The position numbers and the translations under genes are program-made. From positions 614,216 to 678,215 of the forward strand of contig NW_003314338.1 in assembly GCF_000143415.4 (NCBI RefSeq): a stretch of 64,000 nt of DNA, read 5' to 3'. The DNA comes from Selaginella moellendorffii. Lineage: Eukaryota; Plantae; Lycopodiophyta. This document shows positions 2,016 to 57,298 of the stretch, piece after piece. The notes beneath the pieces are model-generated. The model made no database searches and was not told where the DNA came from. It saw nothing but the letters and a program-made list of their open reading frames with translations. Position 1 is the first letter of the stretch. Each line of letters begins with the position of its first letter.

Positions 2016-3129
2016 TTTTATTTGGATTGTAGATTTTATCTCCCAAATAGATATATCTGGGTCAAGTGACCTTACTAATGCATAAGTACATTTTGACCAT
2101 ATAGAGTGGGTATTGGGTTGAACAACCATAAGAGCTCACGTATATGATTCAAGATAGTTATTTTTTCTTACTACCTTAAATTGATTTTAAGTATTGCCCT
2201 TTTTATAGGTTATGTTTCAACTTGACCATTAGAACATGAGAGTTTAAAATATAATACTAGATAGCCAAGAAAAATATTTTGGAAGTCCCTCTCCAACATT
2301 GTACTAAATCGAATTGGTATGCTTACCAATTTTTGTGGTTTTATTGTAGATGGGTCTAGGGCTAATTGGAATGATGTCCAAGCAATTTTTGGGAATAGTC
2401 AACCCCTAAAAGGTTATGAGAGGACTTGGGCTTAGGGCTTAAACTAGCACTACTATCTTATTAAGCCAGATTAATAAGTAGTGTTTAATGAGTTGTGCAA
2501 ACAATGATAAATTGCACCTTCTAAAGAAGAGCATGAGGTAAAAGCAAATGAAATCTGAATATGGTGGTGTGCAGATGGCCATATAAATATAAGTTATGTA
2601 CCACAACTTAAGTCTTAGTTGGGGTGGTAGGAAGTTAGGATGTTTTAATGAGGACATCACTCTTTTCAAGTTGGTTTTTCTTTTTTCTTCTTTTCTTATT
2701 GCCTTTAATATCATCTTTTTCATTAGACCAACCACTTAACGATCTCGCATACACCTTAACTATGAATCTCTCATAGAGTAAATATTGGAGTTAGTGTTCT
2801 TCTGAAGCAGAGAAAGGGAAGATAAGTTTATATAAAATATGTCTATCAAATTTGATACATGCTATAAAGCAATTTTAAAAAGCCTTGACATTTAAGGAAG
2901 GAAGATATATTGGAACAAGACTTTCAATTTCAATGTTATACAATAGGATGAAGAAGAAAATGACTCTACTAGCACGAATAGTGGCAACTGTAGTGGAGGA
3001 AGTGGTTTACAACATATCTATGGAGTACACTCCTCAGGCTTCTATTGGTGACATGAAGACCTTTCACTCAAAACATCACTTTTCTTTGCTAGTGAAGAAG
3101 TTAATGTAATGCATTCTATCTTTCTCCTT

Positions 3130-3266
3130 TTAAGCCAACTGGAAAAAGGGTAATTGTTTGATGAGAAAGCTTTTAGTGGTTATTTTATCCCCATTTATCC
3201 CCCAAGGTTCCAAGGATTCACAATGACAATATATCCAAATCTCATCCCATAATCACATACATTACA
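3130..3266 (+). repeat. Dispersed ~135 bp repeat, probable 3' end of a third LTR family (C); also at 12630-12762 (+) and 18558-18700 (-)
   Basis: Shared ccccaaggttccaaggat...atccaaatctcatccca(t/a)gatcacat...taca. All copies end in -TACA like the other LTRs. Confidence 0.65.
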
Positions 3267-4049
3267 TTCACCCCAACTTTAAAAATGTCAATGTCCTCAT
3301 TGACTATTGACTAATAACCTCTACTGAGGCAAGGGGAACTAACACCTTAATTTTCATATTGAATCTACCAATCCTTCCATTATGTAAATTAATTATTCCA
3401 TGTGAGGCAACTAATCATCCACCCGTACCGAGATTCTCGCATTGTAATCATCTCTAACTCACTTGGTGTCAATTTTGCATGCTTCTACTGCCACGTTCCT
3501 ACCACACCTTGTGATACTAAGCTATGGATCCTCTTGTTGTGGAGATAGCTAGATGCTGGGACATTCACATGCAACAGCAGCTATTTGGAGACAAGTCCTC
3601 GTTAGCAGCACCATCCAGCTCGAGTGGATACCAGCAAATGCTCCAACAACATGCTATCAAGGCAGCTCCCTTGTCGTCTCAACATCATGGCAAAGCTCCT
3701 GAACAGGGGAACGTGCTCTAGACAGCTACACATGAACACCAGCCACGCGAGGACAGAAGAAAAAGGCCACAGTTGCTCAACAGTTTGACAGGGAAATTGA
3801 TCCGGCACTGAAAGAAGCGCCACCTGCTCAGCTTATTGCGTGTAGACTCGACTCAAAGCTGAAGGATGTCCTCCAAGGCCAGCCAGTCACAGCAGAAAGC
3901 AACATAGACAATTTCATAAGCCTCGATCTCTCTTGGCAATCTTTTGCGAGTAGCCTTGGGAATTGGCCAATGGTTGGAAGACTTGGTGAGAGCATCTGGC
4001 ACGTTCGTCTCACTGTCGACCCGTCCACACTGTGACTACACGAGTGACT

Positions 4050-4400: not shown

Positions 4401-6984
4401 GAGTTCTGGGACAGTGAGTGCTTCGGTTACTGTGGAGATGGCTCACATAACCCTTTGAGATCATGTTTTGTCGCATCATCACTCACCACAACAGTTTCTC
4501 ACCAGCTCTACATGACTTGACCTCTTCGGGTGAAGACCAGGCATCTCAGGTGGACACCGTCACCTTTGGAGGTAGTATTTCATCCAAGTTTGCACAAGGA
4601 TAAGCTTGGAACCAACATTTGCAAAATATTTAAGGCAACAACACCTATTGTAGTGGATTCTGGTGGTACAGAGACTCAAGAGAAGGCCACAGGGATGAAC
4701 CTTCATCCAATGGCAGAAGCTTCTTTGGCAAATGCAGACGATCCAGTCATTTTCAACAAATGCCTGAGTATGCCACTTGCAGCAGTTGGAGAACAAAGCC
4801 TTGCCATGCAGTTCGAGTGCCTGTCCTGGGCCACATATCCAACCAACCATTTGTGCTTGTGTATTAACTTGTCCTTTACAGGAAAAAGCTCACAAACCCA
4901 TGTACTTTTTCATGGATCCCCATAAACTTGACAGGCAAAGGCATTACGACCACCCCGAGCATCATTTTGGCTCCAGCTCTTTTGTGTTGTGAGCATGGAG
5001 GCCCTCCCATGAACCTGAGACACTAATAGAAGCTTTTCAACGTGGCGCATGCAAAATCCAATGGTTCCCAAAAAGTTGGCGACAATAAAGTAGCGGCTCT
5101 TTCTCTAGACTTCTGCCACATTCAGGAGTTTCTTCCTGGTTTTCCCAAACACTACTGGCCACACTCTTCAGCTTCCAGCCAGACACCAACATCTTGGAGT
5201 CATCACATTGCATCTGCAACACTGTTCCAACAAGACACAGCTTTCTCCTCGAATTCTTCCAGCTCCAGCTTCAGATTCTAGCACGGTCTTCATTGTTGAG
5301 CCTTTCAGTCTTCCAGTCTACAGAGATCTAGCAAGACCACAGCTGCTCAGCACAGCCTCCAACTTCAAGTTCTCCAACAACATCATTTGTGATCTCTCCA
5401 GATTCTCTCAAAGACTCAAACTCCGACATTTCCAGTGGAGGCCGAGGCATCCTTCTGGACTCCCTCTACCCTCTAGAGGCGAGCTTTAGCATGGCTTCAT
5501 TCATCAAGAGCTGGAGACACAGTCTTCTTCTCTAGTGGTGATGCTCTTTCTCATTTCATTTTCTTTTATTCTACTTTCTTTCACTTTCCTCTCTCTTTCC
5601 AGGACAAATATCTATCATGCAGCAAGTTCCAGCCCGAGCTTTGGTCATGAGGTGGCATCAACTTCATTTGTGTGGGAGCTCATTGCATTTCCTGGCTCTA
5701 CCTCCATTTGTTTCCAAGTTCTTTTTATTCACTTCAGTCTGCATGCATTCCCCTCTATTTTCAATCAGCCACTGTTGCAAATTGGTTCTCTATGACATCC
5801 TACACCATTGCTTGTTACACAATACACATGCCCACAGTGCGATCATTCTATTTTCCTCCATACTCCATCGCCTTCCATAAAATCTCTTCACATCACTTCA
5901 TCAAGGACATCCTAAGCTATCAACAAGAACAGAAATCACAGAATTCTAACAAGAAATCAAAAGTTCTAGCTAAGACCTCACTTCAGTCACAATGTACTAG
6001 AATCCTAGGAGTGGATTGGCGAGTGACTCCCAACTAGCAGGAGTGACCAGAAAACTATGAGATATAGTCCAAAAGCTGGCAACTTCTTCAACTCCAGGCA
6101 ATCAGTGGACAAATGCTATCACCAAAAAGCTACTTTTCTACCAGAAAAAGCCATCAAATACAAGTTTAAGGCTATCAACTTCTACAATATCTCTATTTAG
6201 CCATTCCATCACAATCTTATTTAAAACATTCACATCAACCACCACTCTTTGGAAACTTATGGGGACTAATTAGGAGATCAATGGAGTATTTTTCATGAGT
6301 TTGGGGACCTCATAGAAATTGTCTGGTATGGGCTTTCTTATCTATTTGCTTCTTAGCCTCTTTTACTTTGTCTTTCCACTTTTTAGTGGCTAATTCTTTT
6401 GTCAAGTTTTTCTATATAATTTCCCTTTGATTCTAGAACTTCACACTTTCTCCCACACTTCTTTCTATTAGTTTTCATCACTTTTCTTTGCCATTTTCTT
6501 TTTTTTTTCTTCTTTTTTTTCTTGTTATTTCTTCACTTTTCACCAATTACCCACATTAATATAGTAGGGGTTATGCAACAGAGTCTGGTGCATTCCTCTG
6601 TTATTGAGGAGATAGTTAGATACCAACAATATTCTGATCTATAGCACCCTCTCCATCTGTATTTGAGCACAGGAAAAATAAAGATCACCATTTTATACAA
6701 GAGCATGAATGAGAGAAAGAGGAGGTTGAGAAGCTCAATATTGCTGTGGACTTCTGCCACCTTTATGCTTCTCTAATGAAGCTTCTAAACCTGTGTGCCT
6801 TAATGCTAGCAGTCTGAAGAAGGTGGTGTCATTGAAATCAGGGACATAAAGTCGAAAGTTTTCTTGTGGTTGCTGTGCTGAACCGTGAGAAACCACCCTA
6901 GAAAGGTGTAATGAACAAATTCATCACTCAAGCCACGTGGCATGGAAATAGGCCACAGTTTGACAGGGAAATTGACCTGTAAGC

Positions 6985-7388
6985 TGAGCAGGTAGCGCTT
7001 CTTTCAGGGCCGGATCAATTTCCCTGTCAAACTGTTGAGCAACTGTGGCCTTTTTCTTCTGTCCTCACGTGGCTACTGTGATGTGGTGTGCATGTGTAGC
7101 TGTCTAGAGCACGTTCCCCTGTTCAGGAGCTTTGCCATGATGTTGAGACGACAAGGGAACTGCACGTTGTTGGAGCATTTGCTGGTATCCACTCGAGCTG
7201 GACGGTGCTGCTAACGAGGACTTGTCTCCAAATAGCTGCTGCTGCACGTGAATGTCCCAGCATCTAGCTATCTCCACAACAGGAGGATCCATAGCTTAGT
7301 ATCACAAGGTGTGGTAGGAACGTGGCAGCAGAAGCATGCAAAATCGACACCAAGTGAGTTAGAGATGATTACAATGCGAGAATCTCGG
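6985..7388 (-). repeat. Inverted duplicate of 3429-3835
   Basis: ORFs 3524..3721 (+) and 7104..7292 (-) are near-identical, and the DNA is the reverse complement throughout. Confidence 0.9.
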
Positions 7389-7546
7389 GCTTGCAAGGAT
7401 AACAGTGACCCTTTGGTCTTAAGAACAGGTTTTCATCTCCTTAGAAAACAAAGTGTTCTTCATGAGGAATTTCTTCGTGCATTGCGAACAGCCGTAGACT
7501 AACAGTGTTCTCAAGCACGTTTGAGAACAAAGCAGTGTGAGAGAGC
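7387..7546. repeat. ~160 bp segment X, inverted relative to 12267-12444
   Basis: gggcttgcaa...cagtgaccctttggtcttaagaacaggttttcatctccttagaaaa...gtgtgagagagc matches the reverse complement of 12267-12444 with few differences. Confidence 0.9.
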
Positions 7547-7990
7547 TCCAAGTGCCGCGTCTCGATCTTTTGCATTGGCTCTAGCACCGTGGACTGGCTC
7601 GTGGAGGAGATGAAGAACCGTGGGCCTTGCACAGGGGGGAAGAAGTGGACCCGGACGTGTACAGGAATCCATTCTCGGTGATTGTCACGGACGTCTATCG
7701 GAGGGCCTCACAGGATGTGATCAACTTTGATCTGCTTGGAACGTATGACGAGTATGTGCAGCGTATTGGTAACGATCAAGGCAGGAGCATCAAGGTGGTG
7801 ATCAACATTGGCACTAATGAGGAACAGCGTCACTTCCCTGGCATGGTACCGCTGCCTGCTGATTGTTATTGCATCCGCACCAAGCTGCCACTCTGGTTTG
7901 ATGTGTGAAGTTTGCGTTTTTCTTTCTTTCATATTAGTATATTGTAATTAGTTAACTAATTTCGTTCCTTCATGTTTAGTAGTAACTAAT
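7541..7990 (+). pseudogene. 5'-truncated, frameshifted copy of the 3' end of the eIF4A-like pseudo-helicase
   Basis: Encodes HRGEEVDPDVYRNPFSVIVTDVY...PLWFDV* as in 9071..9450. It has a 13-bp deletion near 7620 relative to the intact gene. Confidence 0.9.
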
Positions 7991-7999
7991 CCATCAGCT

Positions 8000-8225
8000 A
8001 ATGTTTCAATCTTCGTTTAAAATGAACATTAATTTGCTTTCGTGTTTAGTAGCTCTCGCTTGCAGCCACGTAGAACCCCATTCTCGTAAGACGTGGAGGT
8101 GATGTGGATGGCAGTGGCAGTAGCAAGTATACATAGCCTTCTTGAAAACAGTGCGTGGTTTAAATTCGAGCGTCTTGAGTGATCATGGTGAAGACTGGAT
8201 CGCAAGTAAGTCATTCTCAGCATAA
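8000..8225 (-). pseudogene. Rearranged 3'-end fragment of the BURP gene (copy of about 56790-56990)
   Basis: 8085-8225 is the reverse complement of the BURP stop region (gctgagaatgacttacttgcgatccagtcttcaccatga). 8000-8060 matches 56928-56988 in direct orientation. Confidence 0.85.
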
Positions 8226-8227
8226 GC

Positions 8228-8740
8228 TATGGGGGGTTTCCAAATGTATAGTAGGGATAGCGGGTAGGTCAAGCATGGCCGAATAACCTAAGGCATAGTC
8301 TAGCTCCCGCTTGCGTGCCTGTCTTTGTTCTACGTCCGACTTGGGTCTAAGCCCAAGTTTCATTCTATGCTAGCTGGTGGAATACCTATATCCTCGTGTT
8401 AGGCCACCAGTATGCCGAAATAACGCCAGCTCTGTTTGGCTCCATTTTGCATACTGGTCCTAGCATTAGGATGTTAGTTGTTTTAAGACTGTTCTAAGTT
8501 GCTCTAGGCTCCTGTCCCTTCGCTCCTTGGCCTATATGTTTGAGAGTTGCTCCGTGGTTCGGTTTCATCACTTTTTGGCTCTATATTTAGGAGTTTGGCA
8601 CTGTTCTTTTGTTCAGTGGCCTAAGGCCCTTTACACCATTGTCCTTAAGACATATGGTATATGACTGGTTTAAGTTCTACTTTGTGGTTATCCTATGGTA
8701 AATCACTATAGGATAAAGGGACAAAACCAGGTGTGCTACA
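8228..8740 (+). mobile_element. 3' half of a family B LTR
   Basis: ggggggtttccaaatgtatagtagggatag...tatcctatggtaaatcactataggata...gtgctaca, homologous to 24890-25439. Confidence 0.9.
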
Positions 8741-9070
8741 TTAATCCAATTGATCAAATAAAGTTTATAATTATAAGCATATTTGTAATTTATAAATACA
8801 AGATTAATTTGATTGCATATCAACCATTAAATGATAGAATAAAAAACATATACTAGGAAAAGTTTAAGAAAGTTTATAAATTATAAATACAAAATTAATC
8901 TAACCATCCTGTTTGTGGCTTGGGGATGGATCTGGGGAGGCCCATTTGCACATCTTTTTTCTTGTAATCGTTCTTTGCGAAATATTTAAAGCCAACCTTT
9001 TGTAAAATACTCGAGATTAGTTATCAACCAATTACAATATACTAATATGAAAGAAAGAAAAACGCGAACT

Positions 9071-10723
9071 TCACACATCAAACCAGAGTGGCAGCTTGGT
9101 ATGGATGCGATAACAATCAGCAGGCAGCGGTACCATGTCAGGGAAGCAACGCTGTTCCTCAGTAGTGCCAATGTTGATCACCACCTTGATGCTCCTGCCT
9201 CGATCGTTACCAACACGCTGCACATACTCGTCATACGTTCCAGGCAGATCAAAGTTGATCACGTCCTGTGAGGCCCTCCGGTAGACGTCCGTGACAATCA
9301 CCGAGAATGGATTCCTGTACACGTCCGGGTCCACTTCTTCGCCCCTGTGCAAGGCCCACGCCACAAAACCCCGGTTCCTCATCTCCTCCACGAGCCAGTC
9401 CACGGTGCTAGAGCCGATGCAAAAGATCGAGACGCGGCACTTGGAGCTCTCGAGCTGCTCCCAGATCGTGCATAGCTTCTCCAGCTTCTCGTGCTTGCTG
9501 TCCGCTAGAGCAAAGAACTCGCACACTCCCCGCATTGAAACTTTGGCCTCCGGGATCGAGTACAGCGTCCTGGCACTGAGCAGCTCCTCCACGGCTGGGG
9601 TTTTTGTGGAGCAGTGTATGCCGATCTGGGAAGGCATGCAGAGGTTTACAAGGCGACGGATCTGCAACGAAAAAGCTGTGCATTCCCAAAGAGTGTCCCT
9701 GGAAAGTTTTTTAGTCACGTACCTTCCATGCACAAGCAGACTCGAGTAGCTCGTCAGCTTGGACGACGACTAGACTTCCCACGTAGCTGGGCATGACAAG
9801 CTCGTCAATAGAGTCTACAAGGACATGAGCACCTTCCCTGTTGCTGATGTTGAGAGCGCCGACGCCGAGCTCGGTTGCGCAGGCTTGAAGAAGCTCGGCC
9901 ATGAGAGGGAGCTTGTCTCTTGGAGCTAGAACGAGAGGAGCGGCGACACGAGACCGGGAGCAGCGAATGATGCCAGGCAGAAAGAGCGGCAGATCGGCCC
10001 AGTCGTGGATGAGAACGTTGCTCTTCCCCCAGGAAAACATGGTCAGCCCCGAAGTGAAGAGCGAGTCTTCCCAACCATCGTAGCACTTCGTCACTGGAAT
10101 GATATCAGATGAACGAAAACCTCGAGCTAGAACGCAAAGACAGACTTACGAGGCATGTACTTCTCCAGAAAGTGTGAGCTCGCTGGAGCGGGGCGTGGAG
10201 GAGCGAACCACTGCCTTGGCTGGACGTCCAGCTTGCTAAAGCTTGCAAACTCTTCGAAGCCTGCGAAGGCGCTGGCAAAGCTGAAAGCTTGTGCGACGGA
10301 ATCGGCGCTGGCTTGCTTGTCGATGAGAAGCGCCCTGACGGTGATGGAGGAGAGGTGCCCGGCGCGGTCGTAGTGGAGAGCCTGGCCGGGAGTGGCGATG
10401 ATCATGTCCAGCGCCCCAAGCAGCCAGCTCTGCTCCGGCAAGAAGCTGCCGATGAGCAGCCTGGAGGTGGAGGCGCGCAGCAGCCGCACAAACGCCGGGA
10501 TCTTTGCGTCCTCCGTGAGCAGGAATGCGACGCGCCGGAACGTCTGATTCGTTGAGAAGGCGGCTTCCACCAGGCGGAGGCAGCCGCGCAGCCGGTCCTC
10601 GCCAAGCTTGACACCCCTGCACACACAGATGATCGATCGCGTTCCATTCTCGACCACTCACTTGTTATCGTCCGAGGGAAGGATGATCTGGACCTGCTCC
10701 GCCCAGAAGCCGGGTTGCGCCAT
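9071..10723 (-). CDS. Divergent eIF4A/DEAD-box-like pseudo-helicase, ~496 aa; exons 10662-10723, 10150-10616, 9723-10093, 9071-9661
   Basis: Three GT-AG introns (45, 56, 61 nt) join four exons into one open 1491-nt frame. The C-terminal part follows eIF4A HELICc (KLEKLCTIWEQL, IFC...VDWLVEEMRNRG, VINFDLP, YVQRVG). The middle has LVVVQADELL (degenerate DEAD). The N-terminal part has DMIIATPG (motif Ib). Exon 1 is the least certain. Confidence 0.8.
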
Positions 10724-10779
10724 CGCCGATTGGGGAGGAAGTCTCCAAGAACCCTAATTGGCGGGAACCCTAATTGGAG
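10724..10779. promoter_or_regulatory. 56-bp divergent intergenic spacer with two telo-box-like 13-mers
   Basis: GAACCCTAATTGG occurs at 10749-10761 and 10765-10777. The canonical plant telo-box is AAACCCTA. Confidence 0.5.
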
Positions 10780-11574
10780 ATGGTGGTCCGTGTGCTTGGC
10801 GGTGGCGCGGCGAGCGGGATCGTGTATGGATTTGGGGGGAAAGCGTTTAAGGTGAGCATGGAAGGCAACGATCAGCGGGCCGAGCGCAAGTTCCAGGAAC
10901 TCATTGCCATGGCTTGGGCTGCCAAGGAGAAGGAGCTCAAGGTCTGCAAGCTCCTCTCTTTCCACAGCTCGCTACAGGAGGCAGCTGATGCTTACGGGCT
11001 CCCCGCACAGTTTCCAGAGAAGGAGAAGCACTGGGGCAGGAGCGTGCTGGTCATGGAGGAGATCCCCGCATTCCAGAGTTCTGTGTGGTACCGTGTCGTG
11101 CCTGCGGAGTATGAGCCGGGAATCCTTCGCCTCTACCTTGGCCAGGAGGAGACGTGCATCGACGAGTATCCAGAGCTCAGCGATGAGCAGCGGGCGAGGA
11201 TCCACAAGTACAGGAAGCCGGCTGTTGGGTGGAAGGCTGCACGGGATCTCTTGGGAGTGGACGTTGCAGCGGTGGCTTCCGACCTCGGGATCTTCATGGC
11301 TTTCCTGCACGACGAGCTCTCGCTGGACGGAGCCGATGTCGAAGTCCAGATCGGACAGAATGCGTGCCGGTTTGTGGTCGACTTCTCTCACCTCGGCAGC
11401 TTTTCTGATGCGGATACCGCGGGGAAGGCCATGCGTGTCAACGAGAAGTTCTTCCCACGAGCAGCGGGTGCGGGGGCGCCTGGGGCTTTTCTCTGGAAGG
11501 CCTTCACCGACGGTTACCTGCAGAACGCGAAGAGCTTGGCAACTGCTCTCAAAGTCCTCGATCAGCTTGCCTGA
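10780..11574 (+). CDS. Intronless atypical protein-kinase-fold protein, fungal DUF3669-like (264 aa)
   Basis: Open GC-rich ORF from ATG 10780. Motif order: Gly loop LGGGAASGIVY, AFKV, VLVMEEIP, RLYLG, FLHDELSLDGADVEVQIG, VVDF, NEKFFPR, LWKAFTDGYL. Family assignment is from recalled motifs, not a search. Confidence 0.75.
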   Translation: MVVRVLGGGAASGIVYGFGGKAFKVSMEGNDQRAERKFQELIAMAWAAKEKELKVCKLLSFHSSLQEAADAYGLPAQFPEKEKHWGRSVLVMEEIPAFQSSVWYRVVPAEYEPGILRLYLGQEETCIDEYPELSDEQRARIHKYRKPAVGWKAARDLLGVDVAAVASDLGIFMAFLHDELSLDGADVEVQIGQNACRFVVDFSHLGSFSDADTAGKAMRVNEKFFPRAAGAGAPGAFLWKAFTDGYLQNAKSLATALKVLDQLA

Positions 11575-14289
11575 TGAACGGGTTTCGCTCTTCTTCACCA
11601 GAGAATCGAGCGTAGTGAAGAATCGAGCGGCATGTCCAGTGCCTCCATCCCTTCTCCAGCCCTCCTTTGGCCGACCCAGCGGCGGCCTCGACGCTCGTAC
11701 AGCCACCATTTTGGAAACCTTAGATAGCAGCGAATCTGGTGCTGCAGGCTGAGACGTTTCGTTTTCGTTGTTTCTTTTTGGAAAGCAAAGCTGTTATTGA
11801 GGTGAGTGCGTCTTCTCTGCGGCATGGAATCAGGATTCTCGTGCTACTGAAAAGATCGCTTTGAAGCTTGTAGCCAGTACGCGTACGCCGCCACGATCTG
11901 GCGGTTCCTCACTCAATCCTTGCATTGACATCTCTTTAAATTCTGTGGAGCTGGAATATACATATCCTCTTCATGATGCAAATTTGGGTACTTACGTTTA
12001 CTGGACCACAAAGAACACTCCTCTTTCATGGGCATTTGAGGGTGGGTATGATAGTCCAAGTTGCTAATCCATGGGCTGCTCCTCTTTTTCTTCCTCTTGC
12101 CCTGGCTGCTCCTGAGCTCATCTAGCTCACCACTTGCAGCTCCAAGGGCCCTCTTGCAATAGGATTGTTGCCCACTAGCTTGCACCACCAAATAAATGCT
12201 ATGCACAGCTTCTTTAGCCAATCTTTCCTACTCCTAGCTTTTCAGCCGTCACTGGAATGGTCTCTGGCTCTCTCTCTCACACACACTGCTATGTTCTCAA
12301 GCGTGCTTGAGAACACTTTCAGTCTACAGCTGTTTGCAATGCATGAAGAAATTCCTCACGAAGACACTTTGTTTTTTTCTAAGGAGATGAAAACCTGTTC
12401 TTAAGACCAAAGGGTCACTGTTTAATTGTTATCTTTGCAAGCCCATAGTCCCATGGTGAATACTTTTGTTCATGGATGCTCCACCAAAAGGAAGGATATG
12501 TATGATTTCAAATTTTATAGGTAAGAATATACCTTGCTCAAGGGTATATTATATTTTTAAGTAGCCACTAATCAATGGGAATTAAATCTATACTATTTGT
12601 TTTAATATTATATGTAATACACCCATTAAGTTAACTACAAAAGGGGCAACTGTTTAATGAGAGAGCCCTTAATGACTATTTTATCCCTATTTATTCCCCA
12701 AGGTTCCAAGGATCCATAGTGATAGTATATCCAAATCTCATCCCATGATCACATGAGCTACAATTAGTATAGACCTTGGAGTAAAAAGCTCTCACAAATA
12801 TAATGTTAAGTACCATTTTACTCTAAGATATTGCCCCTAGATTGAGCCACCTCAATAGTTAATGAAAAGAGTGTATTATAATAGGTTGAAATTGTTTACC
12901 ATATCGTGGAGTCGAAGCAATAGGCAATGTGCCAAGTGCCAGCAAAATCTAATATAAAGTATATAGAGATGTTTTTGAAGAGCAAATATTAAGCCTAGAT
13001 TCGTGGTAATAAGTTTACTTTTGTTTTAACCCCATATTTCCATAAAGAACAATAGTAAATAGGATTTTCAAGATGGTGCTAGCTATATTGTTGCAACACT
13101 AATGCTAACTATATGAAGTGACATGAAAACACTATAGTGACAAAACCTGATGTAGTACCTAAAGAATGGTTACTTGCTAATGGGGTTAAGCTCACCTTGA
13201 ATAAGATTGAAAACCTTGAGAAATTTAGTTTCAATTTTGAGAGGAGACTTGGAGACATATGTGACAAAACCAAAACTATTCTCATAGAGATGTAAAGAGG
13301 CCACCAAAAAAAGGTAAGGCAATTAAATTTATTGGTATTGTCTCCATTATTCTCTATCAATATTATAAATTTATTATACTTTATATAATTACTAAAAAAC
13401 ATGTTTTCATTTCATATACTTGCAAGTGTTCTTTTCACAATACTGCCCATAGTACTTGTATGTTTTCATTTCTATCTTTATGATTTTAAAAAATATTTCA
13501 TGGTAGCCTTTCTCAGTGTGTCACAAGAGCATATATACCATCATACTAATCATCACCATTGTTTCCACAAAAAGCCACTAAAACATATAATGCATTTCTT
13601 GAAAATCACAAAATTATAGTTTTTTAAAACAAGTAAGAGAGCATTCTTTTTCACCCAATTTGTTACACCCTCTATTATTGCATTTATCTCCAACTCGTGA
13701 TCACTATCTTTATTATCCTCTCTTGTTTTATTTTATATGGTTTGGTTATGTTGTGCAATAGGACAACCATTGCAGCTTTTAGCCTTTGAATCACTACCCT
13801 GAGAAGAAAGATTGTAAAAGTTAAAATTATCAACATTATAACCTAAAGACATTTATGTGTATTTCCCTCTTTTTGAATAAAAGTGCAAATGAAGTTCTAT
13901 AAATTCTAAAAATTATACTATAACAAACCCTCAAGAATGCATTCTAGAGAAAAACTAAATCTCTCTTTTATATACAACAAGCTTACATCAATGGTAGTTT
14001 TTTTTCCTTTCAAATAATTATATGGCCTTACATAGAATCTTATTTCAAATTTAATAATTTTTAAATTCAACATCTTGTAACAAACATCTCTATTATGGCC
14101 TATAATTAATATTTAAATTGTTAGAACAAAAATTGTCCTTTAGAACATTTTTATCTATATAATATATAGTGAGTTGTAAAATTATTAGGTTTGTCATAAC
14201 TTTAATATTTTAAAGTTTATATTGTTTATATTAAATTATAATTGAAAAAATCATGAGTTCAACTCTTCAACTAATGAGCTTAAGAGTGG

Positions 14290-14520
14290 TCTACGCTCAA
14301 TGGGGATGTTCATCCAATCAAGTTTCCTATTTATCATTGATCACTATAGGAGATTAAAATTTTACGTACAAATGTCAAAGAAATGTTGAAGAAGAGTGTT
14401 ATTTGAACATCACAGAGTCTTTAGGCTATTGGGAGTCTTTATTTTTGCATTGACTATCATTAGTTAAATAAAGTGATTATCCCAAATTTGTACCCTCTTC
14501 CTCACATTACTGATCTCTTA
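14290..14520 (+). pseudogene. Ty3/gypsy reverse transcriptase N-terminal remnant; inverted second copy at about 14750-15005
   Basis: Translates as PIKFPIYH*SL*EIKILRTNVKEMLKKSVI and FCIDYH*LNKVIIPNLYPLPHITDLL, matching the gypsy RT motif CIDYRxLN...YPLPxIDDLL. Confidence 0.8.
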
Positions 14521-15488
14521 TAGGGAGAAATTATTGGTTTAGTTCTTGGTGATGCCATTTGGTTTAAAAAATACTCCAGTGGAAAGTTGTTAGTGTATTG
14601 TTCAAAATAAATGGCATCACTAAAAACTCGTATAAATCAAATGGTGTATGAAAAATAGTTTTAGAAATATCCTCCTCAGTAGTCAGCATTTTTTAATACC
14701 CATAAACAAGATGTAACTTGGTAAACCAAAGACTTCTCTTAGATGATCTAAGAGATTAATAATGTGAGGAAGAGGGCACAAATTTAAGGTAGTCATTTTG
14801 TTTAATGAACGATATTCAATGTAAAAACAAATACTCCTATCAAGTGTCATCACAAAATGAAGTTTATATCCTCAAGGATTTCATAACTTTCAAATAACAC
14901 CTTTCTTTAACATTTTCTTGATATTTATATGTAAAATTTTGATCTCCTTTGGTGATCAATGATGAATAGAAACCTTGATTAAACGAGCATTCCTAATTAG
15001 AATAGGACGATGTGTTGCAATTTTGGCCCTAGATAATAAGTCAAATTCAAAAAAATTGACATACTACTTCATGATTCAATCAACCACTACAAGACAAAAA
15101 TTGTCAAAACGATTTAAAGAGGGTATAGAGGAATAAGACAGAAACATATAAAGAAGTAATAGAGAGATAAAAGTGATGGAGGTAGAGGTAGAAGTAAAGG
15201 AAAGTTATTGTCTACCCTTTGGGGAGATAATTTAAGCCCCTATATTACATTTAATAAAATATTATTTTTGATTTAAGGGTAAGATATAATATGTAACAAA
15301 AGTAAGAGAAATGGAAGAAATATAAAAAAGTATGAAACAAGGGGGAAAAGCCTCAAAGTTATATTTGACATAATTGTGTTGCAACTAATCTATACCAAAG
15401 ATGAGGTTAAAAGCTTAACTCGGCACCATCCACAATGACTAAAGTTGAAGCTCGAGATTGCTCATATACACAATTAGGTCCACTTCAT

Positions 15489-17151
15489 TGTGAGACACAA
15501 AGTCCCTAGGCCCCAAAGTGGAGCTGGAAAGGGTGCCACGTGGTAGTGGCCAAAGCAAAAGCCAAACAAGCGTAACACATTTGGACTAAAAGCTCTGACT
15601 TGGAAGGTCGAGAGCGGGAGTGGAACTCCCAAAAATGTGCTCGAGGAACAAGCACGAAGCGAGCAATAAGTGAGACTCTAAAAAGGGACCCAAAAGGACC
15701 AACACATGACACGTGGAAGTGTCCGAGATGGAGTCCGAGATGGACCCGAGTTGGAGTCCGAGGTGGAGTCCGAGGTGGAGTCCGAGGTGGAGTCCGAGAT
15801 GGAGTCCGAGATGGGCCGAGACGGAGTCCGAGATGGAGTCCGAGCTGGAGTCTGAGGTGGAGTCCGAGATGGAGTCCGAGATGGAGTCCGAAGTGGAGTC
15901 TGAGATGGAGTCCGAGATGGACCCGAGATGGAATCCGAGATGGAGTCCGAGAAGGACCCGAGATGGAGTCCGAGGTCGAGATCGAGACCGGGACCGAGAC
16001 CGGGACCGAGACCGAGACCGAGACCGGGACCGGGACCGAGACCGAGGCGGAGGCCAAGACCGAGACTGAGCCCGAGACTGAGCCCGAGTCCGAGTCCGAG
16101 TCCGAGTCCGAGTCTGAGTCCGAGTCTGAGTCCGAGTCCGAGTTCGAGTCTGAGAGGGTGAAAGCCCAAAGCATTCGTCTCCTAGACCCTGAGGGGTTTG
16201 GTGAGCTCCAAAAGTATAGTAAGGGGGAGGACTGCAGTGGAGCCAATTTGGCCAGGAAAGGCCAGTTTGGCCCAGGAAGGCCAGACCCAGTGTTGGGTGA
16301 TGAGCTGACCACTGGGAAGTCCAAGACTAGAGTGAATACAGACCGACAAGCGGGGTAGCTTGGTGAAGTGTTCAAGAGCCGGCTCTAGTTCCCTCGGGAG
16401 ATCGACTGGCCGATGCTCCCAGTCCAAGTGTGGGTGGCACTACCTACTTGGATACCAAGCGTGGCTTAACGAAACCTCACTCTAAGCCCATGGCTAGAGC
16501 ACCTAAAGGCGGAAGGCAGGGAGAGTACCCACGGGGCTCGTGTAGGCCAACGGTGTTCTGAAATGTTGTCCCGGAGTCCCAAATGGGGGAAAGGAGGAAG
16601 AGTAGTCCTCTAGTGTAGTGACTAAGGATACAGTCACATGGTGAAGAAGTCCCGAAGGACCATGGGACTTAGTGGTCGGGCCTGTGGGCCTTGATCGAGT
16701 GGCAGTGTTGGTGAACATGGCCATGGACAGAAAAGGGACTTGGTAGGAACTAACGAAGGGATATTGGGGAAGGCTATTCCCCATGTTTGTGGGCATCTTA
16801 AGGATGCTGAAGAGTGGATCTGGGATGACCACTCATGGTTGGATGGCCTAGTCTTGGAGAGACAGGTTTGTGATGCTAGCGGTATTGGACCACTAGTGTG
16901 GCAAAGGTGAATAGGCATGGCCTTAGCGTAACGGGCCGATATGTCAGTAGTACCTTTGGGTGTCAGTCTTGGGACTGGACACGTGGAGCACTTGGACTAA
17001 GTGCAAGGGATGAATGGCATGGGTGCCATTCTCGGGGCTAGCAAGTCCCAAGTCCTGAATTGGACTTAAGGAGGTTGTGAATGAGACTCCTCCAAATGGT
17101 TGAAGGTGTGGTTAAGTGACTAAAGTAGAACAGAAAATTTAGTTGCTTACA
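15489..17151 (+). mobile_element. Solo LTR, family A (~1.66 kb) with internal 12-mer/6-mer tandem array (15720-16150)
   Basis: Starts TGTGAGAC and ends GCTTACA. Flanks are ttcat/ctcat (5-bp TSD, one mismatch). Contains (GGAGTCCGAGAT)n, (GAGACC)n and (GAGTCC)n. Confidence 0.85.
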
Positions 17152-18731
17152 CTCATCCCATAAACATATGTGTGTTTGGCCATTGCCATAAAGACTAAAA
17201 ATTGACTTTATTGCACAATGTAAATATAGATGGCAATGTATGGTAACAAGCTGAGCAATAGAAGATAAACTCAAACCTATATCAATGAACACAAAGAGAA
17301 TAATAGAAGACTTCTTATTATCAAAACAAGCTTGAAAAGTAAACATTAGATGAACTGGTGTCAAATGAACCCCTTGATGATACTTCTGAAAGAAGGATGG
17401 AAGGGTCACCAACTTAGTTGCACAAAGAGCTTTCACTACTTGTGTGACTTATTATTTCTTAGAAACATCTGTGTCCAAACATTCCACTGTAGTAGTATTA
17501 ATATGACATTATTGATGCCAAGGTTTCTACCTAGGAACTAAAACCTCATATATCTAATTTATATTTGAACTAAAAATTTTAAGAGACACATAAACACACT
17601 TATAGCTTTGCTTAGTATTTCCTCATTTCATCTACACTATCTACTTTTTTTATTCTACTTCAATTTGCATATTATAAAATACAAAAGATGTAAAATTAAC
17701 TCTAATTTAAGGGTATATAATTATACTGTTAAATGAAGTACTATATAGAATCTCAATGCAAAACCATAAGTCTAAACTTTATGACATAGTAAGCATGATT
17801 GTGTTGTGGCTATCTCCCCAATGTTTTAAATCAGTATGATCTCATGCTATATAATATTTGAAAAGCCATTATAATCTTCACTATATGAGGAGGCTTACAT
17901 ATATGTTTTCACCTTAGCTTAAGCCATTTAACCATTTATCTAGCCATCTTATTACTAATACCAACTTTAAAATTAACTGTAATTTGGATAGAAATACTAC
18001 TCAATAATTTTCTTTTTCCTTATAAATTAAACTTCCAAATAGAATAAGTCTTTAATCACACACATGATTAGTTATATTTTTGGAAGTTATACTTTAACTT
18101 ATTTCATACACTTAATAAGTTGTTTATTTTTTAGATGTTTAGTCTAATTTGGTGTTAAAGTTTTATATTAAGAAAAACCTTTTTTCTATTTTCTACAATT
18201 ACATACAATTTGCCTTTCTTGACCAATTTTTAAAGTGAAAATAGTTTTTTTTAAATATGTAGACTTCTCTTGGTGATTCTGTCTTTTACATTTCAGCTTT
18301 TTGCAAGGAAAAATTGCTCACTTATTATGGAATATATATTTCCACTAAAAACAAGGCTAGCCAGTGTATAGTGGAAAACTCTTGCAAGAGAAACCAAGTG
18401 GTTGGTAATGACATTCTCACATCTAACACTTCACAATGACAAAAGTGTGATTGAGCAATACCAAAGGACACAATGGAAGGATAGATAGATAGGGATGAGC
18501 CATTATAATTGAAATGATTATTGAGTCCTTTTGCAAAAGATAACTATTTACTTATACTGTAGCACATGTGATCATGGGATGAGATTTGGATATACTGTCA
18601 TCATGGATCCTTGGAACCTTGGGGGATAAATGGGGATAAAATAGCCATTAAGGGTTCTTTCATTAAGCAATTGCCCCTTTTTTAATTGGCTTAAGGGGAA
18701 AGAGATAATGTGCTATAGTTGGTATGGGAGC

Positions 18732-33022: not shown

Positions 33023-35528
33023 CTAGGATTGAACGGCCAGGCGCTGGAGATGCTCGATAAAAACTTGCAAGCTCACGTCGTCCGTAAATATCACCTCCAC
33101 ATTACCATAGGCGTTGGAGTTGTGAGTGACTGACGGATTGAGCTTGGCGAGGAGGAACCTGGCCTGGCTGCCGTGCTGGTCGCATTCCACCAGCCTGGGA
33201 ACCGGGACCCTGTCCTCCATCACCGCTCTGGCATCGTTCACCGGAGCTTCCAGCAGCGCCTTGAAGCTCTCGTACGCCGGATCGTTGTGGTAGCCGAGCT
33301 TCCTCCACTGGGCGATGGTGGAGCCGTAGTGGACGACCACGTAGAAGTAGGAGTCGAAGAGGAGGATTCTCTCCGGAGTGATGGAGCTCACGTCCAGCAG
33401 CACCGGGACTGGAGGACCCTCGAACGAGTACGAGAAGAGCGTCGGCTGGATCATGATGAGCGATCCCACCACCCCTTCCCGGTTGAGCATGAGCCGGAAG
33501 AAGGCCGTCTCGTCGGGGCTGTTGTTAAACACGGACAGGAACTGCGAGCGCCGGAGGTGGTACATGAACTGCGGGTAAAGCGAGAAGTTGGACGAGAGCC
33601 GGAAGGATTGAGCGTCCTCCTTCGTGTAGTCGCCGAACTTGGAGGCCACCCGTATCAAGTTCTTGTCCAGCCACCGGACGATGTCGAAAGTCTCTTCGTT
33701 CTCCGTCTTGTGGGCCGCGTACTTTGCCATCACCGCCGCCGCTGCCTCCTGATCAAACGCCGCCTTTGCGTCTTGTTCTTGAGAGGCCTCGATCCATCTG
33801 CGAGAAGCCGTCGTCACTCTCAGCCTGGTCTCCCCGTTTCCGTGCTGGTACTGAGTCGCAAACTGGATGAAGAATGGATTCCCTGGTGTGATGCTGGACG
33901 AGTTCTGCGCCACCACCTCGAAGAAGACGGCGATGGAGGTCTTGCTGTTTAGAGTGCACAGCTTCCAGGCACTGGTTCCACCTATGCCAAGCTCAGTCTC
34001 GCTCACCGAAGTGGATTTCCTCTTCAAGCTCGAGCACGGGCCGATGGCGCCATTTATCTTCACCTCGCGAGTGGTCGTAACTTCAAAGGTGCCATTGAAG
34101 CACATCTTGAGCTTTCCTTCCTCGTCCTTCTCGAACAGCTTCCTCAGTGACTTCTTGAATTGCTCCGAGTCGAAAGTCTCGGCCAGGACCATCAAGCCTC
34201 CCGTGCTCTGCACCGCGGACTTTGCCTCGGCACAGCCAACCTGGTCCAGCGAGCACGCAAAGATGTCGAGGACGTGGCTGTTCTCCACCAAAGCCTGGCC
34301 GATCTGGTTGTAAAACTTGCACGACTTCTTGTAGTGAACAGCATTGTCGTTGACAAGATCCTGGTGCGTCCGGATGCTCTTGCTCCGGTCGGTCTCCACC
34401 ACTATCCCCGGCCCGATCGTCACGGGACCCGAGACGAAGAGCATGATCCGGGAGCCGACGTTGGCAGCGCATCCTTCCATGAGCCCCGCGGCCACGGCCA
34501 AAGCAGCGCCTGTAGCTCGTCGAGGTCGGTGGCCGGCCTGGACGTTGAAAGCATTCGGTTGGAGCTCGTCGATAGCACTGTTGATCTCGAAGTCACACTC
34601 GGACGCCGGCAGCAAGAAACGATTTGGAGAGCCTTGTCTTGCCATGCGACCACCTTTGGAAGAGAATCCTAGCAGCTCTTGTATCTGCGATGAAAGAAAA
34701 ACCAGTTAGAACAAAAGGAAGAGAATGAGAGAACTTTACCCGCTGGCTCGTCAGCTCTCTATCGCCGGGAAAAACTAGAGCTTTCGAGTAGCCCGAGTGG
34801 CTAAGAACATGAACATTCACCATCGTCCCAAAGCTGATCAATCCAACTCGAGAGCTCTCGGGGATCATCGCTAGCAGATGCTGGAGCTCCAACTTTAGAG
34901 CCTGCAAATCCTCCAACTCCACGCAAGTGTCCACCACGAAGAGGAAGCACGGGGCATTGGAAGGAACAGGCGGGCCGCTCAAACTCAAGTCCTGGAACGA
35001 TGCCGGCAAAGTTTTATGAGCTCCTGGAAAAGATCCCTGCGGCTGAGCTCCATATCCATACCCCGCGTGTCCAGCGGCTGGGTTGTGTCCCGGAGGATAA
35101 ATCTGAGCTCCCGGTGGTGCCTGGATCGCCGGAGCCTGCGACGAGAATCCACTCCCAACGCTTGGAAAGCCACCGAATCCCTTCTGTGGGATCACATACT
35201 CGACCGTGCTGTAAGTCGGGTAGAGCTCCGCCGGGAGATTGCTCTCGCTCACACCGGCATAGTTTCCAGGGAAATAGTTTCGCTGGAGGCAAAACGGGCA
35301 TCCCCAGATCCTAGCAGTGTAATCCACGTTGCAGTAGGGATTGAGCACTGCCTGGCACTTACATCGCACTGGCTGGTAGGGAAGAACTGGAAGATCCGGC
35401 AGTGGCATCAAGACGTTGGCCATGATCCCAAATGGCACCACCATGCGAGCGGCATCGATCCGGGACGTCGGCCACGCGTTCCACACCCAGCGGAGGCCCT
35501 CTGTCGCCTCGATCTCGTTGAAATCCAT
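33023..35528 (-). CDS. SEC23: Protein transport protein Sec23 (COPII coat), ~816 aa; exons 34740-35528 and 33023-34684
   Basis: N-terminus [20 protein letters not shown] with zinc finger (RCKC...CPFC), trunk [32 protein letters not shown] and C-terminus [10 protein letters not shown]. One 55-nt GT-AG intron joins the two ORFs in frame. Confidence 0.97.
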
Positions 35529-37444: not shown

Positions 37445-38773
37445 ATGCCTGCGCCCGCATTCCGCCCCGACCGGATAGGAGAAGGCTACAAACCGGCCTC
37501 GTACTACAAGCGCTCAAACATCCTGCGAAGGTTTTGCCACCAGAAGAAGCGTAAGGAAGTCGACCCACACTACCAGCAGTACTACCAGGGCCGCCTCCTC
37601 ACCGACGTCACCGAGGTCCTCAAGCCCAGCTTACCGGGTAGCCCCTTCAAAGACCCGGTCTTCTTCCCGCACCACTGCACCGACGTTACTCAGATCTACG
37701 AGAACGCCGGCAAGCTTACCAAGCGCCCCGCCACCGCGCCCGACGTTAGCCACGGCGTGAAGAACTCGGACGTCACCGAGACCAACCGGATCATACCTCC
37801 GGGCCACCTTGGCAAAGACCCACACAAGATCCGGCTGCCATACTTTGGGATACGTACGTCGTCCGTCACGGACCCGTCGAGATACATAGACACGTCAGGT
37901 TTGCCGCTGCTAAGCTGGTGGGAGAACCGCCCAAACTCGAGGATGCCTGCGAGGCCACAGACGGCCCCGGCGGTGGTGTATCCCCAGCATATGAATCCAG
38001 TGGTGTTGCAGAAGCACATACTGGAGAGGAGACCGTATCGGCGGAGCGAGTTCGTGGCGGAGAAGCGGCGGCTCTACAGTGCATCGAAGCCACCATCCTT
38101 GGCTGCCTCCATGCCGAGATCGGATCATCAGGCTGGGAAGAACAGCAATGGCGAGTTACTGACGTCTCGGTCGCAGCTCAACTCGGCGAGGAGTAACGTG
38201 TCGAGCATGACGGAGAAGACGTCGTCGGCGAGGTCGGACAAGCCCCCGGCGTCGGCAAGATCGTCCGCGAAGTCCCAAGCGTCGTCGGTGGCGCAGCACT
38301 CGACCAAGTCCCAGATGTCTGGAACTGGAACTAACAAGTCGGACAAGACCAAGGTTTCCGGGAGCTGTGGATTGAAAGATCTCGAGGTGGGCAGCTCCAA
38401 GAGATCCGAGGGAGCTCGATCCAACCCGCCAGTAGCACCAGCAGCGACAGCAAATTCGGAGAAAACTCCGCCTTCCAAGCCGCCATCGTCGAGAGCGACC
38501 AAGTCTTCCTCGTCTGGAAAGCCGCCAAAGCCACCGCCGCCATCGTCGTCATCTTTGGTGAATCCTCGCAACTCGCTGCCGGGATTTCCATCGCTCACGG
38601 CGGAGGCGCTCGAGAAGCTGGGGCCCGAAAAGATGGACAGGGTCACCAAGTGGGCGGGAGAGCTCCAGACTTGGGCGATACCGGACCATCGATCAAGGCC
38701 TCCAAAGCCAGTTTATTATGAAAGGGATCACGGGAGGAAGAGGACCGACGTGACCGATAACTATGTCTGGTAG
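37445..38773 (+). CDS. Uncharacterised 442-aa protein, Ser/Pro/Lys-rich disordered C-terminal half
   Basis: Long, GC-rich uninterrupted ORF with GC3-biased codons like neighbouring genes. No recognised domain. The start is uncertain (ATG at 37408 and a GTGAGT donor just upstream). Confidence 0.75.
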   Translation: MPAPAFRPDRIGEGYKPASYYKRSNILRRFCHQKKRKEVDPHYQQYYQGRLLTDVTEVLKPSLPGSPFKDPVFFPHHCTDVTQIYENAGKLTKRPATAPDVSHGVKNSDVTETNRIIPPGHLGKDPHKIRLPYFGIRTSSVTDPSRYIDTSGLPLLSWWENRPNSRMPARPQTAPAVVYPQHMNPVVLQKHILERRPYRRSEFVAEKRRLYSASKPPSLAASMPRSDHQAGKNSNGELLTSRSQLNSARSNVSSMTEKTSSARSDKPPASARSSAKSQASSVAQHSTKSQMSGTGTNKSDKTKVSGSCGLKDLEVGSSKRSEGARSNPPVAPAATANSEKTPPSKPPSSRATKSSSSGKPPKPPPPSSSSLVNPRNSLPGFPSLTAEALEKLGPEKMDRVTKWAGELQTWAIPDHRSRPPKPVYYERDHGRKRTDVTDNYVW

Positions 38774-55706: not shown

Positions 55707-55949
55707 CCAAGAAACCTAAAGTTCTTTACATAGCTTCTCAAAGGTTAGATATGTCTTCTGCACAACAAGCATAAACAATGGCGCTGCCTACTTTGTGTAC
55801 GTCAAAGTCTTCTTCGTTTACAAAATGTGGCCTACTGTGTGCTCTCAGAGGGTGTGCTTGCTTCTCTAGCCTCACTCTCTCGCTCGCTCACTCGATCCCT
55901 CCTGGACTCCCGATCCGTCCTGGGCAAGCTCGCTGAACTCACTCGAGAG

Positions 55950-56831
55950 ATGAAGACGATGGTGGTCTTTTTTCTGGCTTTGGTGTTCGTTCTTGCAGAC
56001 TCTTATAGCTACGAGCTGGTAGATACTCGCAACGGGACTAGTCCATGCCCTGCTGCTCGATGCATCCTGCCCGCACCGGCATCGTGGTTTGCTGCCAGTC
56101 TGGACGACGCCACCTGGCAATTGGCTGCGAAATCGTATTCTCCTCTCCTACAAGCGTCTTTTCGCAACATCTCTGCCGTCGACAGTGGAGTGGTGCTTCC
56201 CACCTCTCTCGCTGTTGGAGCATCGATCACAATTCCCATCCTTGACGACAAGCTTCCTCACCGCCGCTTTCTCTCCAATCGCTCATCCTTCCTTCCTGAC
56301 GCTGCCAATGTTGCTGGCTTTCTAGTGGCGATGGGATACGGGCCGGGATCATCCAACCAATACTTCAGCGTCATGGTTCAGGCTTACCAAGCCTATTGTG
56401 GTGGTAAAGCCATAGCTGGGGAGGTACGTGCTTGTTTCGCTTCTAAGAGTTCTATGGACACTTACGTCAAGAGAAATTTCCCGAAAGCCAAATTTGTCAA
56501 ACTTGCAAAGTTCCAGAGCTCTCCAACCAAGATCACACTCACCCGCATTGACAACATGCCTGCTATCCAAACCATCTGCCACAAGATTGTCTTCCCATAT
56601 GCTGTCTACTCGTGCCATAAGATTGACAACACGATTGCAATCTACGTAGAAGGGTACATCAGCCAGAAGCCTACTGAAAAGGAGGTAGCTGTACTCATTT
56701 GTCACGAGGACACATCTAGCTTCTCTCGAGATTCTCCGTCTCTGAGGGCGCTCAACATGAGGCCGGGAGAAGGAGCCTTTTGTCATTTCTATGCTGAGAA
56801 TGACTTACTTGCGATCCAGTCTTCACCATGA
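55950..56831 (+). CDS. Secreted BURP-domain protein (293 aa, intronless)
   Basis: Signal peptide MKTMVVFFLALVFVLADS. Four CH dipeptides with BURP-like spacing (CHKIVFPYAVYSCH...CHEDTS...CHF). Confidence 0.9.
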   Translation: MKTMVVFFLALVFVLADSYSYELVDTRNGTSPCPAARCILPAPASWFAASLDDATWQLAAKSYSPLLQASFRNISAVDSGVVLPTSLAVGASITIPILDDKLPHRRFLSNRSSFLPDAANVAGFLVAMGYGPGSSNQYFSVMVQAYQAYCGGKAIAGEVRACFASKSSMDTYVKRNFPKAKFVKLAKFQSSPTKITLTRIDNMPAIQTICHKIVFPYAVYSCHKIDNTIAIYVEGYISQKPTEKEVAVLICHEDTSSFSRDSPSLRALNMRPGEGAFCHFYAENDLLAIQSSP

Positions 56832-57059
56832 TCACTCAAGACGCTCGACAAGAATAAGTTTAAACCACGCACTGTTTCAAGAAGGCTATGTATACTTGCA
56901 ACTGTCCACATCACCTCCACGTCTTACAATGTTTCAATCTTTGTTTAAAACGAACATTAATTTGCTTTCATGTTTAGTAGCTCTCGCTACGTTGAACCAC
57001 ATTCTCAGCTGAGCAGCATAGAGCTCCTTGGTATGCTGTCTACAACACCTTTTGGAAAA

Positions 57060-57298
57060 ATAGACTAGATTAGTTACTACTAAACATGAAGGAACGAAAT
57101 TACAATATACGAATATGAAAGAAAGAAAAACGCGAACTTCACACATCAAACCAGAGTGGCAGCTTGGTGCGGATGCGATAACAATCAGCAGGCAGCGGTA
57201 CCACGTCAGGGAAGCGACGCTGTTCCTCAGTAGTGCCAATGTTGATCACCACCTTGATGCTCCTGCCTCGATCGTTACCAATACGCTGCACATACTCG
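57060..57298 (-). pseudogene. Third copy (3' tail only) of the eIF4A-like pseudo-helicase
   Basis: EYVQRIGNDRGRSIKVVINIGTTEEQRRFPDVVPLPADCYRIRTKLPLWFDV* plus the shared 3'UTR. Truncated at 57298. Confidence 0.9.

Follow-up and report, generated by a model that had tools for sequence, protein, structure and literature searches.

An expressed divergent gene pair in Selaginella moellendorffii: a spliced eIF4A-like pseudo-helicase gene and a DUF3669 gene with a predicted minimal kinase fold

A stretch of 64,000 nucleotides of the Selaginella moellendorffii genome (contig NW_003314338.1, positions 614,216 to 678,215 of the forward strand; hereafter the window) contains two genes that stand back-to-back between window positions 9071 and 11574. 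The minus-strand gene encodes a protein that resembles the translation initiation factor eIF4A and has lost the catalytic motifs of a helicase (pseudo-eIF4A), and the plus-strand gene encodes a DUF3669 protein that is predicted to adopt a minimal kinase fold (Table 1). The window coordinates were anchored on GL377642.1 (GCA_000143415.2), to which positions 7001 to 14000 are 100% identical. AT-rich blocks and the DUF3669 match could point to fungal DNA, but this is rejected by the identity with the Selaginella scaffold, and the genes of the BURP and Sec23/24 families found elsewhere in the window agree with a plant origin. The start codons are located at 10723 (−) and 10780 (+) and are separated by a spacer of 56 bp (10724–10779), in which the 13-mer GAACCCTAATTGG occurs twice, at 10749–10761 and 10765–10777, as a 16-bp tandem duplication. 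An earlier note, made from the sequence of this stretch, had pointed out the positions of the two ATG codons, their 56-bp spacing, and the duplicated telo-box-like 13-mer, all of which hold in the sequence. The plus-strand reading frame, described there as intact, indeed runs uninterrupted from 10780 to 11574 and encodes 264 aa. Because an in-frame TAA is present at 10771–10773, the codon at 10780 is the first possible start of this frame. On the minus strand, three open reading frames (ORFs) in different frames are joined via three GT-AG introns of 45, 56, and 61 nt, and the resulting 1491-nt coding sequence (CDS) encodes 496 aa.

Public transcriptome contigs of four runs from four studies were aligned to window positions 8400–12600; these contigs carry no strand, exact transcription start site (TSS), or expression level. 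In each of the four runs, a contig of ~1.6 kb was obtained for the helicase-like gene that omits exactly 10617–10661, 10094–10149, and 9662–9722. Because these are precisely the three predicted introns, it is apparent that the pseudo-eIF4A gene is transcribed and spliced as predicted. The 5′ limit of this contig was 10762/10763 in three runs and 10747 in X6, the shallowest run, with a 5′ untranslated region (UTR) of ~40 nt, and its 3′ limit was located at ~8993–9066. Contigs of the kinase gene started between 10796 and 10845 (10809–11648 in X1, 10845–11541 in X5, and fragments in X6 and X7). Contigs were found over each of the two genes in all four runs, which confirms that both are transcribed, and none of the four runs gave any contig cover in the flanks 8400–8822 and 11784–12488.

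The RNA 5′ ends of the two genes are at most 33 bp apart, and the second copy of GAACCCTAATTGG is flanked by them on both sides. With 5′ ends that are far closer than 1 kb, the two genes qualify as a bidirectional-promoter pair, the contigs themselves giving no strand. These divergent transcripts of two expressed genes indicate that the promoter region is common to both, as had been proposed from the spacing of the start codons. The accompanying proposal that the 5′ ends of the two genes probably overlap was not supported, because the interval 10763–10796 was bridged by contigs in none of the four runs. The NCBI model at this position, a 744-aa product (window 9071–11709; 12130–14768 on the minus strand of locus L001), joins the helicase-like gene to an ORF antisense to the kinase gene (10972–11709, −), and the kinase gene has no NCBI annotation. 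This fusion is contradicted by the RNA contigs, since they show two separate transcripts; the public gene model is thus corrected from one 744-aa fusion to two genes, both of which are expressed.

It is known that telo-boxes are a mark of translation-machinery gene promoters and that a single telo-box binds TRB proteins (PMC10167121). Across the window, AACCCTAA was found four times, compared with an expected number of 2.7. The telo-box-like motif is therefore not enriched in the window, and its placement alone is notable. A scan of the window for bacterial-type promoters and terminators was empty, this method being irrelevant for a plant, and an Rfam scan of the window returned nothing.

Searches and folding of the helicase-like product were performed on individual exons. 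Residues 37–176 of exon 4 (~140 residues) matched the RecA2 domain in a phmmer search against PDB with E values ranging from 9e-12 to 5e-10 (eIF4A-I, 9e-12; eIF4A-III, 2e-10), and the product is thus homologous to eIF4A over RecA2. The Pfam Helicase_C model scored 16.4 bits on exon 4, below its gathering cutoff of 23.5, and no Pfam DEAD domain was found in the gene. In the printed alignment with eIF4A-I, motif V reads YRRASQD instead of ARGID and carries a deletion, and motif VI reads QRVGNDRGR instead of HRIGRGGR. There is no GKT-type P-loop (Walker A) anywhere in the 496-aa product, and none of the catalytic motifs I, II, and VI is intact. When the product was compared by eye with the eIF4A sequence, motif II (DEAD) presumably corresponded to VQAD; we also take the stretch PLVLAPRDKL to be motif Ia and CST to be the counterpart of SAT (also ST(K)), with the DEAD-to-SAT spacing kept. 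Exon 2 appears to the eye to contain a second ATPGQ ... IDKQ stretch. Exons 2 and 3 gave nothing significant against PDB, whether searched singly or combined into a profile with their counterparts in the paralogue described below, the best match being to motifs Ib–II of Hera (E 0.15). The score of exon 2 against exon 3 was reached by 34 of 500 shuffles (p ~0.07), which is only suggestive of a partial internal duplication of the RecA1 core. An AlphaFold2 model of the N-terminal half, obtained via the same paralogue with a three-row alignment, had a pLDDT of 44 and was unusable.

Since the P-loop is absent and the DEAD, SAT, and HRIGRGGR motifs are altered, pseudo-eIF4A cannot function as an RNA helicase powered by ATP; it would be at most a binding or scaffold protein. 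"Dead eIF4A-like helicase", as the product had been called from the sequence for its loss of the catalytic motifs, is a fair description, with RecA2 recognisable, motifs V and VI degenerate, and no significant match in the N-terminal half. Pseudo-eIF4A resembles eIF4A-I and eIF4A-III in the RecA2 alignment, in the motif II–III spacing as judged by eye, and in its telo-box promoter of the type found in translation-machinery genes. In contrast to them, it has no Walker A motif, carries altered motifs II, V, and VI, has an N-terminal half that is not detectably RecA1, and cannot be an ATPase; its length is 496 aa compared with ~410 aa for eIF4A. A retained and spliced pseudo-eIF4A is thus documented, and pseudoenzymes of this class have been little studied in plants.

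The product of the plus-strand gene matched PF12417 (DUF3669) with 22.6 bits (E 9.8e-5), a marginal score that lies above the Pfam cutoff of 22, and its paralogue P0002 scored 22.1 bits on the same model. The Pkinase, RIO1, and Kdo models of Pfam gave no match at E ≤1, and by sequence the protein thus falls outside the eukaryotic protein kinase (ePK), Bud32, and RIO families. In an alignment of 36 sequences, all 13 invariant columns are kept in the Selaginella protein (M1, R117, Y119, G121, D186, E188, G192, D201, F202, N221, P226, F242, and Y246), and D183 is nearly invariant, the identity to family relatives being 22–29%. D183, D186, and E188 are located at the position of the catalytic loop, and D201-F202 at that of DFG. 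The AlphaFold2 model had a pLDDT of 88.9, and the nearest solved structures were those of PRPK/Bud32 (Z 11.6–13.3), followed by Rio1 (Z 10.6) and then by APH enzymes. The nearest Atlas cluster, one of Ascomycota DUF3669 proteins, was matched with a TM score of 0.78 over 249 residues, which places the protein in the fold of this family. These results are in line with the view of the earlier note that the kinase fold is unlike the plant ePK families, and they give the uncharacterised DUF3669 family a fold, that of a Bud32/PRPK/RIO-like minimal kinase. Because the family-invariant catalytic residues are kept, the gene product is probably an active ATPase or kinase.

Bud32/PRPK (KEOPS) and RIO proteins share their fold with the Selaginella protein, over ~180 residues in the case of PRPK/Bud32, and in all of them the kinase domain is minimal and lacks an extension of the activation loop. 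The differences are a sequence identity of 11–18%, no membership in their Pfam families, and a catalytic loop of the form D-A-x-D-V-E in place of HxDxxxxN; KEOPS or pre-40S partners are not indicated for the Selaginella kinase. Compared with fungal DUF3669 proteins, the likeness consists of the Pfam match at threshold, the invariant residues, and the Ascomycota cluster in the Atlas, whereas the fungal proteins have 300–440 aa and the Selaginella protein has 264 aa and stands on a long branch. The Pfam label of the DUF3669 family, "zinc finger protein", is owed to KZFP members from vertebrates that look unrelated (PMC6923878; 10.1101/2025.03.01.640934).

A single-sequence word search with the kinase gave zero matches. 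Among 1.8 billion representatives searched exhaustively with phmmer, only two relatives were detected, namely P0002, a fragment of a Selaginella paralogue, and P0003, a protein encoded on a Logan contig. A profile search yielded 225 matches, nearly all of which were fungal DUF3669 proteins. The nearest predicted viral structures were Pithovirus LCPAC proteins (LCPAC304; E 5.8e-12, TM score 0.65). In an Atlas feature search, 68 of the 100 nearest clusters belonged to the unnamed set, and the top-ranked cluster of this set was 88% viral (Nucleocytoviricota). IMG/VR was scanned with three queries (the kinase, P0004, and the family alignment), none of which led to a confirmed viral relative. In a maximum-likelihood tree, the two Selaginella sequences were grouped together (98/98) on a long branch with no resolvable donor. 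Because the DUF3669 family is otherwise fungal and giant-viral, the plant copies were probably acquired horizontally, and the patchy distribution of the family over fungi, giant viruses, and one lycophyte suggests a horizontal transfer into a land plant. The horizontal origin and the donor are unproven, because the tree cannot place the Selaginella clade.

P0003 and P0004, the nearest relatives of the kinase outside Selaginella, are encoded on a 60% GC contig of orphan genes. The Logan contig sequences L004 (1–7415) and L003 (SRR25000030 and SRR24925876) have a GC content of 60–62% and carry nine tightly packed, mostly orphan genes, with the nearest non-Selaginella relative of the kinase among them; a giant virus and a compact eukaryote are both conceivable as their source. 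Maumus et al. (2014) described EFJ10148, a functionally uncharacterised S. moellendorffii family that has 23 copies and was likely acquired horizontally; its homologues are confined to a few fungi and one chlorovirus, and no neighbouring viral genes were reported (PMC4083422). The taxonomic profile of that family is like that of the kinase family, and on this published profile only, the two may be the same; the paper mentions neither a helicase partner nor a kinase fold.

Members of both families were also found at a second Selaginella locus, L002 (GL377659.1), together with a gene for a dual-specificity phosphatase (DSP). The phosphatase is a cellular MKP-type DSP in which the HCxxGxxRS motif is intact. 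The kinase copy of L002 stands head-to-head with the phosphatase gene and is convergent to the helicase-like gene; it has lost the Gly-loop, and two frame changes are needed to read it. On the other hand, the helicase-like paralogues of the window and of L002, which are ~33% identical, have kept their ORFs and share the same N-terminal architecture. Telo-boxes are present at L002 as well: the canonical AAACCCTAG occurs in the spacer between the phosphatase and kinase genes, and a further AACCCTA occurs upstream of the helicase paralogue. The kinase and helicase-like families are thus linked at two Selaginella loci, which differ both in orientation and in whether the kinase is intact. The pairing proposed in the earlier note stands in part: the two families are again adjacent at L002, but the head-to-head rule does not hold there, where the arrangement is convergent, the kinase is frameshifted, and the head-to-head partner is the DSP phosphatase. 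Outside Selaginella, neither the four fungal loci inspected (Trichoderma, Neurospora, Rhizophlyctis, and Desarmillaria) nor L004 showed the linkage, a helicase or DSP gene being present next to the DUF3669 gene in none of them. In Trichoderma guizhouense (L005 7953–11209), the DUF3669 gene is head-to-head with a gene for an APH-family phosphotransferase, a member of another kinase-fold family.

We consider it fairly probable that the locus is an expressed divergent pair of lineage-restricted Selaginella genes served by one very short telo-box promoter, and that their linkage is mainly a legacy and does not reflect an obligate two-protein system. In this reading, the pseudo-helicase is a spliced descendant of eIF4A in which RecA2 is still recognisable. 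The kinase gene would rely on a promoter of the host, lying back-to-back with a second gene, namely the pseudo-helicase gene here and the DSP phosphatase gene in L002. The shared telo-box core would confer constitutive, proliferation-linked expression on both genes, as is typical for plant translation-machinery genes, and the linkage of helicase and kinase would be mainly the legacy of block duplication within Selaginella. Several points weigh against this reading. The recurrence of kinase and helicase at the second locus could reflect selection for linkage and not history. The tree could not decide between a place of the Selaginella clade within the fungi and one beside the virus-like sequences. 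The activity of the kinase is deduced from conserved residues alone, and if the TSS of its gene is located downstream of 10780, translation would start at Met27 and the product would be devoid of the Gly-loop and the Lys. Finally, the N-terminal half of pseudo-eIF4A is assigned to RecA1 by motif spacing read by eye, without statistical support.

It appears unlikely that the two proteins form a functional module in which pseudo-eIF4A binds, restrains, or is phosphorylated by the kinase, or baits eIF4A-targeting factors while the kinase does the signalling or executing; in some copies of such a module, a DSP phosphatase would be the eraser. Such a module would fit the common promoter and the expression of both genes in all four runs, and it would also fit the renewed adjacency of the two families in L002, next to an apparently intact DSP phosphatase. 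That the pseudo-helicase paralogues have kept ORF and architecture at ~33% identity suggests long retention. Bud32 and RIO, the nearest folds of the kinase, are ATPase switches that act on RNA-protein complexes, and this was counted in favour of the module. However, the orientation of the genes is not conserved, the L002 kinase is frameshifted and without the Gly-loop, the linkage is absent from the four fungal loci and from L004, and a Pfam search of the two proteins detected no immune or toxin domain. A complex prediction for the kinase with RecA2 had a score of 0.00, which is no answer and is evidence neither way.

We regard a functional coupling between the two products as possible but improbable. 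The decoy/guard or toxin-antidote reading offered in the earlier note is speculation, which the present data neither require nor exclude. The likeness to plant NLR pairs such as RGA4/RGA5 and RRS1/RPS4 is positional only (a divergent arrangement with a short common promoter); unlike those receptors, the Selaginella proteins have no NB-ARC, TIR, CC, or LRR domain in Pfam, and an immune role is not indicated. The fullest form of the idea is a lineage-specific co-expressed module in which a Bud32/RIO-like kinase, obtained horizontally from a fungal or giant-viral source, and a pseudo-helicase derived from a host eIF4A duplicate, with a DSP phosphatase in some copies, act jointly on the machinery of translation initiation, for example as a decoy/guard against eIF4A-targeting factors or as a regulatory switch, and we regard this as unlikely. 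A functional pairing would amount to an unusual module in a plant, directed at the initiation of translation.

That the pair is what remains of the cargo of a giant virus integrated into the genome, or of another large mobile element, as a domesticated or decaying block that was copied around the genome, seems to us improbable too. Kinase, DSP phosphatase, eIF4A-like helicase, and RNase H genes are all typical of giant viruses, and the Pithovirus LCPAC structures, the largely unnamed Atlas clusters with a mostly viral cluster in first rank, and the GC-rich contig of P0003 and P0004, which is full of short orphan genes, point in the same direction, as do the partial copies at the DNA level, the flanking repeats, and, if it is the same family, EFJ10148 with its fungal and chlorovirus homologues. 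On the other hand, three spliceosomal introns interrupt the helicase gene, its telo-box promoter is of a plant kind, and it is matched best by the cellular eIF4A-I and eIF4A-III; the L002 phosphatase is likewise of a cellular type. Among the window ORFs of at least 150 aa, the only size scanned, no giant-virus hallmark gene (capsid, PolB, A32, D5, etc.) was detected, these ORFs being Sec23/24, BURP, or without a family. In addition, the three IMG/VR scans gave no relative and the tree has no viral sister group.

That both genes are transcribed but functionless relics, i.e. decaying duplicates at an active promoter whose intact frames reflect youth and not selection, is very unlikely, for although the helicase has kept none of its catalytic motifs, there are several truncated copies in the vicinity, the L002 kinase is frameshifted, the family is very narrow, and the ratio of non-synonymous to synonymous substitution rates between the 3′ end of the gene and its inverted fragment copy is 0.55 (an uninformative value from 15 substitutions only), a 496-codon frame has been kept across three correctly spliced introns, the kinase has kept all 13 invariant residues at such low identity, the helicase paralogues have kept their ORFs at ~33% identity, and expression is robust in four studies.

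Table 1. Positions of the genes, the spacer, and related copies. Positions are those of the window unless another sequence is named.
Feature	Position	Strand	Basis or remark
Pseudo-eIF4A CDS, 4 exons (10723–10662, 10616–10150, 10093–9723, 9661–9071, stop included)	9071–10723	−	In-frame model and spliced contigs
Pseudo-eIF4A mRNA	~10763 to ~9001	−	RNA contigs
Exon 4 of pseudo-eIF4A: end of RecA1 (SAT-like CST) and whole RecA2	9074–9661	−	eIF4A-I alignment
Spacer: bidirectional promoter and 5′ UTRs, two telo-box-like 13-mers	10724–10779		Sequence and RNA contig ends
Intronless DUF3669 gene, 264 aa, minimal kinase fold (Bud32/PRPK/RIO-like)	10780–11574	+	Pfam, AlphaFold2, RNA contigs
Copy of the cassette, inverted and with an internal deletion	7387–7964	+	Equals the reverse complement of 12276–12444 joined to that of 9012–9451
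Helicase 3′ end, third copy (partial), last ~55 codons nearly identical	57068–57510	−	Tail-to-tail with BURP-domain gene
Paralogous locus: DSP phosphatase gene and DUF3669 kinase paralogue divergent, kinase paralogue and helicase-like paralogue (376-aa model) convergent	L002 (GL377659.1) 8855–12154		

Two partial copies of the helicase-like gene are present elsewhere in the window. The inverted copy at 7387–7964 contains only the last ~125 helicase codons and is annotated by NCBI as the hypothetical protein SELMODRAFT_425793 (P0001), which was the one match in a protein search with exon 4. The BURP-domain gene and the adjoining helicase fragment span 55827–57510, and a copy of the BURP 3′ flank is located at 8000–8224, between two inverted helicase ends. 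This recurrence points to segmental copying of the junction between the helicase 3′ end and the BURP 3′ end.

The description of the surroundings as decayed transposon DNA holds insofar as interspersed and inverted repeats flank the pair; as a whole, it was not fully borne out. An interspersed repeat of ~520–550 bp at 8226–8744 has six more copies in the window, at ~20.3, 24.9, 26.5, 31.1, 49.6, and 60.5 kb, with identities of 67–79%. Inverted repeats of ~410 bp (93–98% identity) at 3428–3835 and 6980–7388 enclose 3.1 kb, and the arrangement resembles that of an element whose terminal inverted repeats are long. A further repeat of ~140 bp occurs at 3117–3258, 12622–12762, and 18558–18707. A Sec23/Sec24-family gene with at least two large exons was found at 33023–35528 (−), adjoined by a 442-aa ORF without a Pfam family (37445–38773). 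At 15710–16149, within a GC-rich block, arrays with a 12-nt period (GAGTCCGAGATG-like) make up long ORFs on both strands, and a diverged inverted copy is located at ~1.6–2.0 kb (1622–1970).

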